Shown here: in pieces, positions 7,570 to 25,490 of the stretch
How the letters are laid out: every line of letters begins with the position of its first letter
Numbering within the stretch: position 1 is the first letter of the stretch
IMG/VR virus record: IMGVR_UViG_3300045971_000577
Coordinates: 248,001 to 312,000 of that record
Length of the DNA: 64,000 bases
Direction: 5' to 3' (one strand)
The notes under the pieces: generated by a model
Seen by the model: the letters and a program-made list of their open reading frames with translations, nothing else
Databases searched by the model: none
What the model was told of the DNA's origin: nothing
Translations under genes and position numbers: made by a program

Positions 7570-7644
7570 TGGTGCGTCTGGAGGGAATCGAACCCTCGTC
7601 ATAGGATTTAGAATCCCGTACTCTAACCGCTGAGCTACAAACGC
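7570..7644 (-). tRNA. Amber suppressor tRNA (anticodon CTA)
   Basis: GCGTTTG/CAGACGC acceptor, ACCA; anticodon arm CGGGA-TTCTAAA-TCCTA; anticodon at 7609-7611. Confidence 0.85.
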
Positions 7645-12952: not shown

Positions 12953-13203
12953 GTTTTCAAACTAACCTAAACGAACTGTTTGCATCCGGTAACCCATATG
13001 CGGTGGCAATAGCAGAGAAGATAAAGAATATCGACGATGCGTATGCTAATAAACTCATCACTGCGGATGAAGCTAAAGACCTTCTCAACGATATGAAAAC
13101 GGAAGAAGCATTAGTTGATCTTGCCAACAATTTGCAAATAAAACTCTATGTTCAGCAAACAATCGATAAGTTGATATTTCTTGTCGAGAATGTGATTTTT
13201 TAG
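12949..13203 (+). CDS. Hypothetical protein coupled to the lipoprotein
   Basis: ATGA overlap. Confidence 0.7.
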   Translation: MSFQTNLNELFASGNPYAVAIAEKIKNIDDAYANKLITADEAKDLLNDMKTEEALVDLANNLQIKLYVQQTIDKLIFLVENVIF

Positions 13204-13208
13204 TCATA

Positions 13209-13234
13209 AGAATAGGAACCGAAGTTCCTATTCT
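13209..13234. terminator. Hairpin terminator between convergent units
   Basis: Perfect 11-bp stem with a UUCG loop on the minus strand. Confidence 0.75.
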
Positions 13235-13500
13235 GGATTTTCTGTTGCCAGGCATTCCTGCCCCGTGGTTTACCGCTTTTTAGGCAGCAAGAGCCTCAGT
13301 GTAAAACGAATCATTTGCGTTTACTTTTTGTTTTCTTCGATTTACGGTCGTTGCTCACCGAGCGATAAGAAGCCTACTCAATACCCAGGCGATTCCGGAT
13401 CGGGCCCATAACTAAAACTTCACAAAAGGCTTAGTGGTGGACCCGGGGGGATTCGAACCCCCTTGTTGAATGTCTTTCTGTTTCCTACTTTACGCTGTTA
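13235..13500 (-). ncRNA. ssrA: Circularly permuted (two-piece) tmRNA
   Basis: Acceptor piece (T-arm, CGGGTCC-ACCA ending 13435) lies upstream of the 5' end GGGCCCG (13407); tag ANDSFYTEALAA* at 13280-13318; G3:U70; outer ends approximate. Confidence 0.85.
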
Positions 13501-13620
13501 TTTTCCTTAATTCTGATTCATAATAGTGTAGCAGACCTACAATAGTCATACGATCAAATCTGTTACCGTATCCTAAATGCCGTCTGTAGTAATCAATCTG
13601 TGATTCAATAAATGATTTAC

Positions 13621-14046
13621 TCATGATAGCTTCTGACTCTTTACGATACGTCTAAGTTCGAGTTCTGTGTCTCGCTTCTTTTCCGTAGCTCGTTTGTCGT
13701 ACTCTTTCTTACCCTTTGCAAGTCCAATCGAGAGTTTGTATTTACCTCTCGTTGAATAAATCTTCAACGGCACAAGAGTTAGTCCACGTTCCTTTGTCTT
13801 ACCGATGAGACGTTGGATTTCTTTCTTATGCAAAAGCAACTTACGCGAACGGGTCATATCGTGCTCGGAGCCACCGATGTTAGCGCCCACAAGCATGATG
13901 TTACCATCCATAACTACGCAGTGAGTTCCGGCGATTGAACAGCTCTTAGCCGCAATCGCCTTTACTTCCCAGCCTTCCAGCTTCATTCCACACTCGTATT
14001 GCTCGAGTATTTCATAATCAAAGAAGGCCTTCTGATTTGAAATCAT
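13621..14046 (-). CDS. smpB: SsrA-binding protein
   Basis: [52 protein letters not shown]. Confidence 0.95.
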
Positions 14047-14810
14047 AATTTCTCTTTACAGTTATCAAAATGCCATCTATTCATCGATTCTTTACAGTTA
14101 TCAAAATGCCATCTATTCATCGATCCTTCACCGCCCGACCGTTGGCAGTGCGGGCACTCAACAGTATTTCTTTTTTTACCAAGCCTTGACAATCCGATGT
14201 TAATATTATGTTCTGCCGAATTAGGTTTACCTTTTGCTGCTAAACTCATTTTTTCACGAGTCTCTTGGCTTACTACCTTATTTCGCATTTTCTGTTTTGT
14301 TTCTTCGGACATATTTTGTTTGGCTATGCTCATCTTATATCTCGCATCATCTGACATTGTTTTGCCGATGTTAGCCTCGCGCATTTTCTGTTTTGTTTCT
14401 TCTGTCCGAATTTTACCTGTATTTTTATCACTTATTCTTTGACGAACTTCTTTGGGCATAGATTTACTAGCTAATCCGATAATTTTCCGGGTTGCTGCAG
14501 AATGACTATGACCGGATGCTCCTTCGCCGCCATCGGTTCTGTTTTCTAAAATCCCTGTGCCTAAATCTTTTCGACCATACCACCGAATCATTCTGCGTTC
14601 GATTGCAAATGCACCGAGCTCAGTTAGATTACATTCTAAAATTACAATACGTGATATATCTACAGGAGTGTGTACTCCTGTATTATTCTTTTTATTCCTA
14701 TGATCAACATAAGCTCGATCTCCTGTGCCTTTTCCGATATAGTACGGTGTGCCAACATTAGCGGTTGCCGAGTTACGTGATCTTAAATAGGCATATACAT
14801 AATAATTCAT
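14043..14810 (-). CDS. GIY-YIG-like homing endonuclease with NUMOD3 repeats
   Basis: YYVYAYLR...PYYIGKG; repeated S.ET(K/R).KM. Confidence 0.88.
14053..14124. repeat. Exact 36-bp tandem duplication
   Basis: [12 protein letters not shown] encoded twice. Confidence 0.9.
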
Positions 14811-14876: not shown

Positions 14877-15545
14877 TTACCACATAAGGTCAAAGAAACC
14901 GCGTAACACCTTGTTAACGCTTCCTGTCTTTCCGCTGTTGTGATCCTTTACAACATCGTCTTGAAAACGGTATGTTTGTATCTTATCCCCGCGCATGCCA
15001 GAACCAACCTGTTCTTTGCGGCTTGAATCTAGCGCGAACTTGTGCTCTCTATGTGCGTGTGCGTTTAGTGCCTCTAGCAGGGCTTGCTTCGCCTGATCTT
15101 GGCTATTTTGCCTGGATCGACACTGTGCCGTGGCAGTTTGGCCTGTAGGCAAATACGTTATACGACACGAATTTTGATGTTTGTTGCGGTGTTGGCCGCC
15201 TGCGCCAGTACCGCTGTACCATTCTATTCTAAAATCCGAGTCTTTGAATTCGATATTACGCAATTCGGGATCAGTGATCGCAACTGTTACGGTGCTGGTA
15301 TGAACTCTGCCCTTGCGCTCGGTTGGTGGAATACGCTGTATGCGGTGCCCACCTGCTTCTTTCTCTAACTGTGATAAGTCTGCACCCTCAACTTCTATGA
15401 AAAGTTCTCCGGGGAGATTCCTTATCACGCGATTGATTCAGCCAACTCTGTCAAAGTGGCGTTGGTATGCTGCTGCAAGATCTACAGTGAATAGCTTGCT
15501 GTCTTCTCCGCCCTCAGCTGCGCGTATTTCAATAATTCTTTTCAC
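14877..15545 (-). CDS. prfA: RF1-type class I release factor interrupted by an in-frame TGA (15438-15440)
   Basis: GGAGA RBS + GTG; IIEIRAAEGGEDSKLF, HRIQRIPPTERKGRVHTS (PxT), GAGGQH (GGQ), IQTYRF. Confidence 0.85.
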
Positions 15546-15731
15546 ATTTATCTCCAAATTTTACTAAAAAAGCCAAATAGTCCGATTCTTCGGAAAATTT
15601 GTATACAGAATCTCCCTCAGACGTCCATCGTATCCATTTACCATCTTCCCAGGACCCGATAGTAACATAGCACCACTCGAATGCATCATTAGATGCAATT
15701 CTATGTTTGTTTGATATAAAAGCTTTGTATT

Positions 15732-18023: not shown

Positions 18024-18437
18024 TTATTTCGGCAAGCGTGCTGTTGGTAAACCTGTAAGGTCTACACCTAGTTCCTCTGCCAACTTGGAAAGCATCTTTT
18101 CCTTTGATGCCTTGTCCTTTAATTCCTTCTTGAACTTACGCGCAAGAGCTGCGTCTTCGCGCTCCTTCTTTTCCTTTGCTGCCTTGGCTTCTTCTGCCTT
18201 GGCGATAGCCTTATAGTCAGCAATGGTCTTCGCAATGTATGCAGGTGCGTCAACTGGACGTTCGATGATCTTGAATCCTACACGATAAGATGCTCGTTGA
18301 AGCAATAGGAACTCATCGTGTGTAACTTCATCCCAGTCAGTAATGCTGTTAGCAATCATAAGGGAGGTGTCATATCCGTCATAATCACTCACATTTATTT
18401 CACGTGTAGTGATAATAGCAATCTTGTGTGTTGTCAT
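18024..18437 (-). CDS. Hypothetical protein, Lys/Glu-rich coiled coil
   Basis: ORF track; GGAGA RBS. Confidence 0.75.
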   Translation of the reverse strand: MTTHKIAIITTREINVSDYDGYDTSLMIANSITDWDEVTHDEFLLLQRASYRVGFKIIERPVDAPAYIAKTIADYKAIAKAEEAKAAKEKKEREDAALARKFKKELKDKASKEKMLSKLAEELGVDLTGLPTARLPK

Positions 18438-18439
18438 AA

Positions 18440-18619
18440 TTATTCTCCTGCCAGCTCTTTCATTCTTTTTAGAATATCGTTCAACTTTGCACCATCCATT
18501 GCTCTGCAGGATGTAATGTTGGTTGGACGAAACGGTCTCCCCTCATCTGTTTCTTCAACGATGTCAAGGATACGAAAGAAATCTCTTACGAGCTGTTTTA
18601 GTTCTTCTTCGTTTGTCAT
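18440..18619 (-). CDS. Hypothetical protein (59 aa, MTNEEELKQLVRDFF...)
   Basis: Read manually. Confidence 0.65.
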   Translation of the reverse strand: MTNEEELKQLVRDFFRILDIVEETDEGRPFRPTNITSCRAMDGAKLNDILKRMKELAGE

Positions 18620-18622
18620 ATC

Positions 18623-18684
18623 AGTATGTGCTTTTTATTTTCAGAATGAATGAAATTTTTATTTAGGTTTGCTGAATACATACT
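18623..18684 (-). ncRNA. Anticodon-stem-loop-like element, copy 2 (CAT loop)
   Basis: AGTATGT/ACATACT stem, ATTCAGCAA motif, TTTCA-TTCATTC-TGAAA. Confidence 0.55.
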
Positions 18685-18693
18685 TTAGAAACT

Positions 18694-18767
18694 TGGTAGG
18701 GCTGCAGGGAATCAAACCCTGGTTGACCGGTTAAAAGCCGGATATTCTATCATTGAATTACAACCCC
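18694..18767 (-). tRNA. tRNA-Lys(TTT)
   Basis: Loop CTTTTAA; CCA. Confidence 0.9.
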
Positions 18768-18934
18768 ATTAATCTATTTGGTTCTTTCTTTAGCTTATCA
18801 ACAACTGCTTGTCGTTGACATGCTTTCGTCTTACAGTAATAATCCTTTGCAAGACCTTTGTAATCATTCGGCTGTAACGAAAACAAATACTTTCTGCATG
18901 CTTCACAGCTAATATCGATTGTCCTACTTGTCAT
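18758..18934 (-). CDS. Small Cys-rich hypothetical protein
   Basis: CEAC...CKTKAC. Confidence 0.55.
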   Translation of the reverse strand: MTSRTIDISCEACRKYLFSLQPNDYKGLAKDYYCKTKACQRQAVVDKLKKEPNRLMGL

Positions 18935-19257
18935 CAATGCTCCAATGTCCATTTAATCGCTGCCGAAGATGGAAATTGGTCACCCTTCTTAAACTTTTTA
19001 TCATTTAAGATAAATGGTTTGTTAACCATATCGCCATTCCACCAACCTCGCTCGATGATAATGTATCCTTCCTGCCCAAGTTGTTCTCTTAACTTTGCGA
19101 ATTCAGGATGATCTTCTGAATGTGTCGACGAATACATAGTATCTGAGTGTTTTAACGCGTCAACTAAGCCTTCTTCTGTATTTTCAAACTTTCGTTTCCA
19201 TTCGTTATGAACGGTTACAGAAGTGCAGTAAGCTATGTCAATAGTAAATGTTTTCAT
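18934..19257 (-). CDS. Hypothetical protein
   Basis: ORF track, trimmed to MKTFTIDI after tRNA-Ser. Confidence 0.7.
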   Translation of the reverse strand: MKTFTIDIAYCTSVTVHNEWKRKFENTEEGLVDALKHSDTMYSSTHSEDHPEFAKLREQLGQEGYIIIERGWWNGDMVNKPFILNDKKFKKGDQFPSSAAIKWTLEH

Positions 19258-19262
19258 ATTAT

Positions 19263-19353
19263 TGGCGGATGACCGGGGAGTCGAACCCCGAAGGCTGAGA
19301 TCATCAACCCGACAGATTAGCAATCTGCTCTGATACCATTACAGGAGTCATCC
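19263..19353 (-). tRNA. tRNA-Ser(GCT)
   Basis: Loop TTGCTAA; long variable arm; GCCA. Confidence 0.92.
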
Positions 19354-19360
19354 AAAAACG

Positions 19361-19411
19361 TAGTATACAACAAAAACGGCGCAGAGTCAAGTAGACCGTG
19401 CGCCGTTTTGA
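19361..19411 (-). terminator. Terminator after the cytochrome gene, overlapping a sigma70 promoter
   Basis: AAAACGGCGCA/TGCGCCGTTTT stem; TTGACT-N17-TATACT. Confidence 0.65.
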
Positions 19412-19426
19412 TAAAATTAGGTATTC

Positions 19427-20131
19427 TTACGCAAATACGGTCATCAAGGTTACCCCGGCCTTACGGATATATATCTGCGCATAGTTGATTAGCTTATCAA
19501 CTGCTGATGCACACTTGAAACTATTATCAATACTATGGCATGTTTCGCATGCATCCGATGTAGTTGGATGCGATGCGTAGCTTGATTTACCTTTTGCATA
19601 GTTACCATCGTGGCATGTTACGCAACCTGTGGTAACACCTGCGTGGATAGCTGAGTGGCTTACATCCCAATTGTTTGTATTGTGGCAAGCCAAGCAATCA
19701 GCAGTTGTAGGAATGTGTTCTGAAGGTTTCTTTCTTGCGCCCTGACCGTTATATGTTGCATTATGGCAAGCGTCACATCTCATTGAGGCAACTGAGGTAT
19801 GGCTCATATGCGGACTCACGAATGTTGTTGTGGTGTGGCACGAAGAACATTCAACAATAGTGGTCGGAATATGTCCAGTCGAAAAACCCATCGCCATGTA
19901 TGGTGTAGTACCTGTGTGGCAAATGGTGCATTGGCGCGGAGTACCAACGAATATACCAGCCTTGTGGCAAGATGCGCATGTGCTACATTTGCCTGTCGAT
20001 AGGTGTGCGCCGGTTAGAGGCCACATTGGGTGAGATTGTTCGTACATGGTGCATTCAGCAGCTGATGCCGATACCGGTGATAGTAGTGTTATAAAGGCTA
20101 CTACGATAGCAGCAAGAAAGCGTGAAATCAT
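19427..20131 (-). CDS. Exported multihaem c-type cytochrome (7 CxxCH)
   Basis: CASCH, CTICH, CSSCH, CDACH, CLACH, CVTCH, CETCH; HIPTT repeats; Sec-type signal ending SASA; GGAG RBS before ATG 20131. Confidence 0.9.
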   Translation of the reverse strand: MISRFLAAIVVAFITLLSPVSASAAECTMYEQSHPMWPLTGAHLSTGKCSTCASCHKAGIFVGTPRQCTICHTGTTPYMAMGFSTGHIPTTIVECSSCHTTTTFVSPHMSHTSVASMRCDACHNATYNGQGARKKPSEHIPTTADCLACHNTNNWDVSHSAIHAGVTTGCVTCHDGNYAKGKSSYASHPTTSDACETCHSIDNSFKCASAVDKLINYAQIYIRKAGVTLMTVFA

Positions 20132-25413: not shown

Positions 25414-25490
25414 TGGTGACCCTGCACGGGATTGAACCGCGTCTATTCTGGTTTTGGAGACCAGCGCACCACCATTTATGCGTCAGAGCC
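25414..25490 (-). tRNA. tRNA-Trp(CCA) with A8/C9
   Basis: Loop CTCCAAA; CCA. Confidence 0.88.

Follow-up and report, generated by a model that had tools for sequence, protein, structure and literature searches.

Introduction

Expression of peptide release factors is in several cases controlled by recoding within their own genes. In bacterial prfB, the frameshift cassette has the consensus YTT_TRA_C together with an upstream Shine-Dalgarno-like sequence (PMC3711429). The gene described here, found in a phage DNA window of 64,000 nucleotides (the whole stretch that was analysed), resembles prfB in that an early in-frame stop lies within a release-factor gene (codon 26 in E. coli, codon 36 here) and inefficient termination is needed for the full-length product; moreover, its sister lineages carry the same cassette, with a Shine-Dalgarno-like stretch, a spacing of 3-4 nt, CUU, a stop and C. 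It differs from prfB in three respects: the window gene stays in frame 0 (read-through) without a Shine-Dalgarno-like stimulator; its factor is of RF1 type, so that by its motifs its UGA would be read by another factor, RF2; and its site falls in domain 2 of a protein that is devoid of domain 1, a place not homologous to the prfB site.

Among the closest known systems are also a read-through circuit of plant eRF1 (PMC5397192) and the eRF1-like gene of Mimivirus and Megavirus, which needs both read-through and a frameshift (Jeudy et al. 2012, PMC3521657) and is, like the window gene, a virus-borne termination factor that depends on a stop codon being read through. However, the giant-virus factor is a eukaryotic-type, omnipotent eRF1 of an amoeba virus and senses itself, whereas here a bacterial-type RF1 is encoded by phages and has a single read-through site at a Trp codon. 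In phage Q-beta, the A1 protein arises by low-level read-through of UGA as Trp with no dedicated suppressor, and a phage gene in which tRNA-Trp naturally decodes UGA at a low level would be common to both cases. Yet Q-beta extends a complete coat protein into a minor variant, while the window stop is early and internal, and without read-through no functional product is made.

PrfH (RFH; Baranov et al. 2006, PMC1586002) is likewise a paralogue of bacterial class-I release factors that is without domain 1 but has retained GGQ. The codon-recognition motif of RFH is altered (SXY) and its gene has an RtcB-like partner, whereas the window protein keeps PxT, scores 39 bits against TIGR03072 (cut-off 166.65) and has tRNA, tmRNA and SmpB genes as neighbours. 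In the Jade phages, a phage RF1 is also linked to UGA decoding (Borges et al., bioRxiv 10.1101/2021.08.26.457843); in those phages, in-frame TGA is found in late genes and the release-factor gene keeps to the standard code, while in the window the situation is reversed, with only the release-factor gene interrupted.

According to a 2016 recoding review, no RF2 gene was known in which an early in-frame UGA is followed by the same frame, and a counterpart in an RF1 gene was likewise not known (PMC5009743). A survey of huge phages and a study of phage recoding mention phage release factors, but not such an in-frame TGA, and literature searches returned no published description of a UGA-gated RF1-type gene. 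Recoding-controlled expression of release factors is thus known, and its RF1-type phage version with an in-frame UGA seems to be undescribed in the literature found.

Results

An RF1-type gene with an early in-frame TGA

The window derives from a 369-kb phage contig, and ~73 kb of that genome (about a fifth) was examined. On the minus strand, a GTG start codon (15545-15543) opens 35 RF1-like codons (VKRIIEIRAAEGGEDSKLF...DRVG, closing ...FDRVG) that run up to an in-frame TGA, from which 186 codons continue in unchanged frame to the terminal TAA (Table 1). This layout (GGAGA, GTG at 15545, 35 codons, TGA at 15438-15440 and the same frame through PPT and GGQ) had been proposed by a sequence-only reading of the window, and all of its coordinates hold. 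Its placement of the TGA at a position that is Trp in RF1 was borne out as well, since Trp occupies the interrupted column in 18 of the 20 full-length representatives of cellular RF1 clusters. That reading had also pointed to an ATG-TGA start-stop across the GTG; it is present, but is specific to this lineage and, as relatives start with an in-frame ATG, is treated as probably incidental.

Table 1. Features of the release-factor locus and its surroundings. Positions are those of the window unless a contig is named.
Feature	Position	Strand	Remarks
Shine-Dalgarno-like GGAGA	15551..15555	-	5 nt upstream of GTG start; from sequence
ORF part 1, GTG start plus 34 codons	15441..15545	-	sequence, domain searches, dN/dS, AF2 model
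In-frame TGA, codon 36, putative recoding site	15438..15440	-	GGC before, A after; Trp position of cellular RF1
ORF part 2, same frame	14880..15437	-	rest of domain 2, domain 3 with GGQ, domain 4
PPT, RF1-type PxT 'anticodon' motif	15321..15329	-	followed by ERKGRVHTS; sequence, RF1 alignment
GGQ, peptidyl-tRNA hydrolysis motif	15192..15200	-	domain 3; sequence, RF1 alignment
Terminal TAA of release-factor gene	14877..14879	-	
ATG-TGA minimal start-stop	15542..15547	-	overlaps GTG; lineage-specific
GIY-YIG/NUMOD3 homing-endonuclease gene	14043-14810	-	between release-factor gene and SmpB
SmpB	13621-14046	-	with tmRNA, downstream of release-factor gene in same tRNA island
Phage tmRNA	13189-13535	-	tag ANDSFYTEALAA
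Amber suppressor tRNA(CUA)	7570-7644	-	best-scoring window tRNA, 66.9 bits
tRNA-Trp(CCA)	25414..25490	-	candidate near-cognate UGA decoder
tRNA island	1-29 kb		34 ARAGORN genes plus tRNA-Lys(UUU) and tRNA-His(GUG) found by Rfam only
Frameshift cassettes (examples)	L087:1476-1497 (LR745208.1), L164:614-635, L170:2976-2997		also in L185-L264

In Pfam searches, PCRF matched both pieces of the gene (profile positions 103-132 and 155-194) and the RF-1 domain the second piece only. Among NCBIfam models, prfA ranked best (143-145 bits), followed by prfB (87) and prfH (39). All of these scores lie below the equivalog cut-offs (for example, 143 bits against 423 for the prfA equivalog TIGR00019), as the protein starts at about RF1 residue 108 and is without domain 1; that domain is dispensable for codon recognition and hydrolysis, yet required for RF3-assisted recycling (PMC1586002). 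The protein aligned to RF1 chains with E = 2e-30. Its RF1-type residues include Pro and Thr at the first and third positions of PxT, the Gln of QRIPPT and the H-T-S residues. The decoding core reads QR..PPTE..GRVHTS, and the tripeptide motif is kept across the family. As judged from its sequence, the gene product is a class-I peptide release factor of ~222 residues, of RF1 type and devoid of domain 1, with its codon specificity being predicted.

The protein was modelled with AlphaFold2 on a relative (P0005; 81% identical) whose code-4 call is equivalent to the read-through product. The model (pLDDT 91.8) has a strand at residues 2-9 and a helix at residues 14-34, with Trp opening the next strand, and was superposed by Foldseek on ribosome-bound RF1 with a TM of 0.89-0.90 and an rmsd of 2.1-2.6 Å. 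ORF part 1 encodes the first beta-strand of RF domain 2, a core strand, and the helix bearing its GGxDS tip, by which the first stop-codon base is read. The superposition predicts that the N-terminal 35 residues are integral to the decoding domain.

Conservation of the TGA and selection on both sides of it

A scan of viral contigs returned 259 relatives, among which 80 were fetched (61-100% identity, many on contigs of 320-524 kb). All 80 have TGA at the site, all 80 have TGG at two further conserved Trp columns of the gene, and at a variable Trp column TGG is used in 10 of 10. Across viral contigs, genomes and metagenomes, the column is TGA in all 149 distinct clade members, with TGG, TAA and TAG at zero. 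These sequences reach down to ~46% identity and range from 42 to 70% G+C, with isolates of Thalassospira, Jiella and Gemmobacter (51-70% G+C) among the carriers. In the same alignment, invariant columns of two-fold-degenerate amino acids use both codons freely; the invariance of the TGA is far beyond chance. An alignment of homologues had been proposed as a check on whether TGA is kept or alternates with TGG, and TGA was found in all and TGG in none. The clade is absent from GenBank phages, in which megablast of the locus gave no match and the best tblastn match was 40% identical. Searches of viral contigs with P0137, P0157 and the body of L170 returned almost no close relatives.

The ratio dN/dS is 0.15 over the 35 codons upstream of the TGA and 0.16 and 0.125 downstream, as estimated with dS > 1.2 and synonymous sites near saturation; in-frame constraint starts at the first codon past the TGA (0.16 just downstream). 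An error of sequencing, a recent nonsense mutation, a pseudogene or selenocysteine insertion would have nothing beyond the bare stop codon to recommend it and is given next to no weight here, as the same TGA is found in 149 distinct assemblies at a dN/dS of ~0.15, the position is Trp in cellular RF1, and sliding RNAalifold windows revealed no SECIS-like hairpin. The same windows revealed no conserved hairpin near the TGA. It had been considered that the true base might be TGG or that this copy might be a lesioned pseudogene among intact homologues; both are contradicted by homologues that keep TGA and are themselves interrupted, with purifying selection on both sides of it.

Start codons (ATG, GTG or TTG) are absent within 20 codons past the TGA in 56 of 71 distinct sequences. 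This bears on a split-gene organization, in which the 35-residue peptide and a separately initiated or reinitiated 183-residue protein cooperate, or the C-terminal part works alone. Such an organization would be consistent with the GTG that the window copy has four codons past its TGA and with a distant lineage (L237/L239) in which TGA is followed directly by ATG. It is very improbable in view of the missing restart codons in most sequences, the in-frame purifying selection on the codons right after the TGA, and the core strand and first-base-reading helix tip that the N-terminal piece holds.

The immediate context of the TGA is also biased. T never follows the TGA in the 111 distinct genes compared, the next base being A in 79, G in 23 and C in 9; termination is stronger when the stop is followed by T (PMC11126739; PMC5289835). 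The Leu directly after the TGA is always encoded by CTN, although 44.5% of the other Leu codons in the gene are TTR, and the Gly codon before the TGA is GGC in 77% of cases versus 34.5% elsewhere in the gene. These biases look selected and, being counts from mutually related sequences, are suggestive rather than proof.

Standard code around the gene

TGA serves as an ordinary stop in the neighbourhood. It terminates 28 of the 81 ORFs of the window and, in related flanks totalling 714 kb, 79 of 214 long ORFs; in four relatives it even ends the release-factor gene itself. The TGA of the homing-endonuclease gene (14045-14043) overlaps the ATG of SmpB, and that of SmpB (13623-13621) overlaps the next ATG, so that the earlier argument against global recoding, which was drawn from such ATGA overlaps, stands. 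The genes for major head, tail sheath, tail fibre and other virion proteins (30-64 kb) are intact under the standard code. In the related flanks, release-factor genes are almost the sole ORFs that are interrupted by a single stop and have no restart codon. Moreover, no signal of global recoding emerged when ORF coverage was compared between codes 11, 4 and 15 and a code in which TAA is sense, the gain from TGA being no larger than that from TAG or TAA.

Reassignment of TGA to Trp genome-wide or in late genes (genetic code 4), as in recoded gut phages, would fit with the gene callers that translate short contigs of the release-factor gene with code 4, and with the RF1 genes of the TGA-recoded Jade phages. 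It is scarcely credible given the frequent termination at TGA, the intact virion genes and the lack of coverage gain, as well as the TGG at the other Trp codons of the gene in every fetched relative and the relatives that end this very gene in TGA.

In public protein sets, the gene (P0001-P0120; cf. window 15438-15545) appears in two forms, a truncated product of 183 residues and a 222-residue translation of a short contig with code 4. The 222-residue proteins with Trp at the site were considered as intact TGG versions and rejected, their DNA having TGA and the proteins being code-4 gene calls. Both database forms are annotation artefacts of the in-frame TGA.

The tRNA island and candidate decoders

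The phage carries ~38 tRNAs, in a tRNA island that measures 38 kb including the part beyond the window. No tRNA(UCA) was found in the window, in the 9 kb past its left end or in 50 related flanks. The two Rfam matches missed by ARAGORN were considered as opal suppressors and rejected, as they are tRNA-Lys(UUU) and tRNA-His(GUG), neither of which reads UGA. The phage tRNA-Trp genes were compared for D-arm features like those of the Hirsh suppressor, a comparison that is uninterpretable from sequence alone.

A phage product encoded elsewhere in the genome (for instance, an opal suppressor tRNA, an inhibitor of RF2 or a modifier of tRNA-Trp) might make the TGA a temporal gate that opens at a set stage of infection, rather than a sensor of host state. 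The richness in tRNAs, with an amber suppressor tRNA(CUA) among them, is in line with such timing, as is the fact that only ~20% of the genome was seen, and recoding of stop codons has been proposed as a timer for other phages (bioRxiv 10.1101/2021.08.26.457843). The idea is nonetheless improbable, in that tRNA(UCA) was found neither in the 38-kb island nor in the related flanks, and strong suppression would be costly where TGA ends about one-third of the genes and late structural genes are uninterrupted.

The tRNA(CUA) is at most 72% identical to any other tRNA of the window. TAG terminates 12 of the 81 window ORFs, and no TAG-interrupted gene was seen. On contig L206, a tRNA(CUA) lies 400 nt upstream of a release-factor gene of the frameshift type described below, and L264 has a tRNA with the four-base anticodon UCUA.

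The release factor, tmRNA and SmpB form a translation-termination and ribosome-rescue module. The tmRNA fits both the beta-proteobacterial and the permuted Rfam models; in many relatives it directly follows the release-factor gene, with tag peptides that vary. The homing-endonuclease gene is not found at that place in most relatives, and the C-terminus of its product has a direct duplication, with a 12-residue unit present twice. A PTH2-type peptidyl-tRNA hydrolase and an RNA ligase (L165:14574-14972 and 18380-19456), 3.5-8.4 kb past the left end of the window, extend the translation-maintenance gene set of the same island.

Relocated stops and a frameshift sister subfamily

In two non-sister lineages within the TGA clade (L094 and L162), the Trp site itself is TGG, and the TGA has moved to Trp+4. 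Furthermore, in two huge phages (LR756502.1 and LR745206.1), one or two TGAs are found at other nearby codons; the 50-kb surroundings of both are in the standard code, and in those of LR756502.1 the release-factor gene is the only interrupted ORF. P0125 and P0129, which lie inside the well-supported TGA clade, have reverted to TGG and, together with L205 and L086, are the uninterrupted relatives; the existence of these indicates that the gate is not indispensable.

In a sister subfamily of 32 distinct sequences, a +1 frameshift is needed, as the N-terminal piece lies in the -1 frame relative to the body. The frame junction falls in the same alignment column as the window TGA and reads CTT T in 32 of 32 sequences, followed by GA (16), AG (13) or AA (3). 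A C comes after the stop in 28 of the 32, and a GGAGG-like stretch is found 3-4 nt upstream of the cassette in 24 of them. These genes score RF1-like, lie often within tRNA arrays and have a decoding motif (PPT/PPN) of the same type whichever stop (UAG, UGA or UAA) is used. By its elements, the junction is recognizable as a prfB cassette at a non-homologous place in an RF1-type gene, and the UAG cassette (n=13) would be the RF1 counterpart of prfB autoregulation.

One frameshift gene (L170; CUU UAG C) is located inside the read-through clade, and in-frame TGA variants are located inside the frameshift group; on the tree, read-through and frameshift have apparently been switched in both directions. 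Inside the frameshift group, L237 and L239 have at about position 1290 an in-frame CTC TGA directly followed by ATG, and that lineage could use termination-reinitiation as a third way round the stop. The relocated TGAs, together with the frameshift cassette at the same codon, point to selection on the early stop as such. It is an even call that a single codon where domain 2 begins is a hot-spot of recoding at which the device was repeatedly swapped (read-through of UGA, a UGA moved to another codon, or a +1 frameshift as in prfB at UAG, UGA or UAA), and that the short RF1-type factors of phage tRNA islands are natural sensors of termination capacity.

Several genes of the read-through type adjoin a tRNA-Trp(CCA) (L043:2220-2295 and L051:2775-2847), and tRNA-Leu(GAG), the tRNA that slips on CUU, is found just upstream of three genes of the frameshift type (L197:986-1070, L201:993-1070 and L236:753-836); these counts are too small to separate from chance within tRNA arrays.

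The swapped stops also bear on whether the short factor itself acts at its own UGA, by broadened or omnipotent recognition or by unproductive binding to the A site, so that its own abundance sets the level of read-through in a true, prfB-like autoregulation. RF1 does not read UGA, and with PxT, the QR-element Gln (QRIPPT) and the H-T-S residues all being of RF1 type and the NCBIfam prfA score being well above that of prfB, such autoregulation is unlikely. In its favour, the sister cassettes exchange UAG, UGA and UAA while keeping the same PPT-type motif, which is simplest if the factor reads all three. Moreover, every other known release-factor gene that is regulated by recoding is self-sensing, namely prfB and the eRF1 genes of giant viruses and plants (PMC5009743, PMC3521657, PMC5397192).

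Discussion

With moderate confidence, we favour programmed read-through of the UGA, probably as Trp, that ties the amount of the factor to poor termination. Near-cognate read-through is what remains given the unchanged frame, the restart codons that are mostly absent, and the lack of a hairpin near the TGA and of a tRNA(UCA) in the DNA searched. In this mechanism, the full-length factor would be made only when a ribosome decodes the UGA at codon 36 as sense; the likeliest decoder would be a near-cognate Trp-tRNA(CCA) from either host or phage, by which the ancestral Trp would be put back. Among the stops of E. coli, UGA is the leakiest and is misread mainly as Trp, at a rate that depends on RF2 and on growth conditions (PMC11126739). 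Output would be set by the competition at the UGA between host RF2 and the tRNA, being low at the basal state and rising when termination at UGA is slow, and the early stop would thereby act as both the sensor and the gate of termination efficiency. As no stimulatory RNA element was found, the efficiency of read-through may be low. A possible rationale is that the extra RF1-type activity would take over UAA and free RF2 for UGA, which would close a homeostatic loop. Insertion of Trp, RF2 as the competitor, the regulatory purpose and the load-sharing rationale are the parts of this mechanism that we infer.

Because the motifs are of RF1 type, RF2 is the expected competitor and the circuit would be a cross-factor one. 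However, that RF2 specifically is the sensed quantity, which we infer, is weakened by the frameshift relatives, which use UAG, UGA or UAA with the same PPT/PPN motif; what is sensed may be the overall capacity for termination, or the activity of the factor itself. A cross-factor sensor analogous to prfB had been proposed in the sequence-only reading: its requirement for read-through stood, and its analogy to prfB gained from the prfB-like cassette of the sister subfamily at the same codon, with depletion of RF2 being a candidate for the signal.

The TGA-interrupted gene is also found in genome assemblies from cultured Alphaproteobacteria, namely Gemmobacter caeni DSM 21823 (L171; 446-kb contig), Jiella sp. 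LLJ827 (L169; 391-kb contig) and Thalassospira xianhensis MCCC 1A02616 (L168). The Gemmobacter copy sits inside a phage-like tRNA array (8 tRNAs in 6.5 kb), and these contigs may be huge phages, prophages or phage-plasmids. Their presence in cultured strains makes the family open to experimental testing.

The family comprises hundreds of phage sequences from many habitats and exposes a systematic annotation error, in which the gene is called as a truncated 183-residue product or an entire short contig is put in code 4. It offers, at a single homologous position, naturally occurring cassettes for read-through and for frameshifting that are useful for studying how one recoding device evolves into another, and it appears to fill both of the gaps named in the 2016 review (PMC5009743). 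If the proposed control is true, these would be the first recoding-controlled RF1-type genes, among them a UAG equivalent of prfB autoregulation, which has long been sought, and within the window's clade the activity of RF2 would control the synthesis of an RF1-type factor. This suggests that large phages wire imported translation factors to the termination status of the infected cell.
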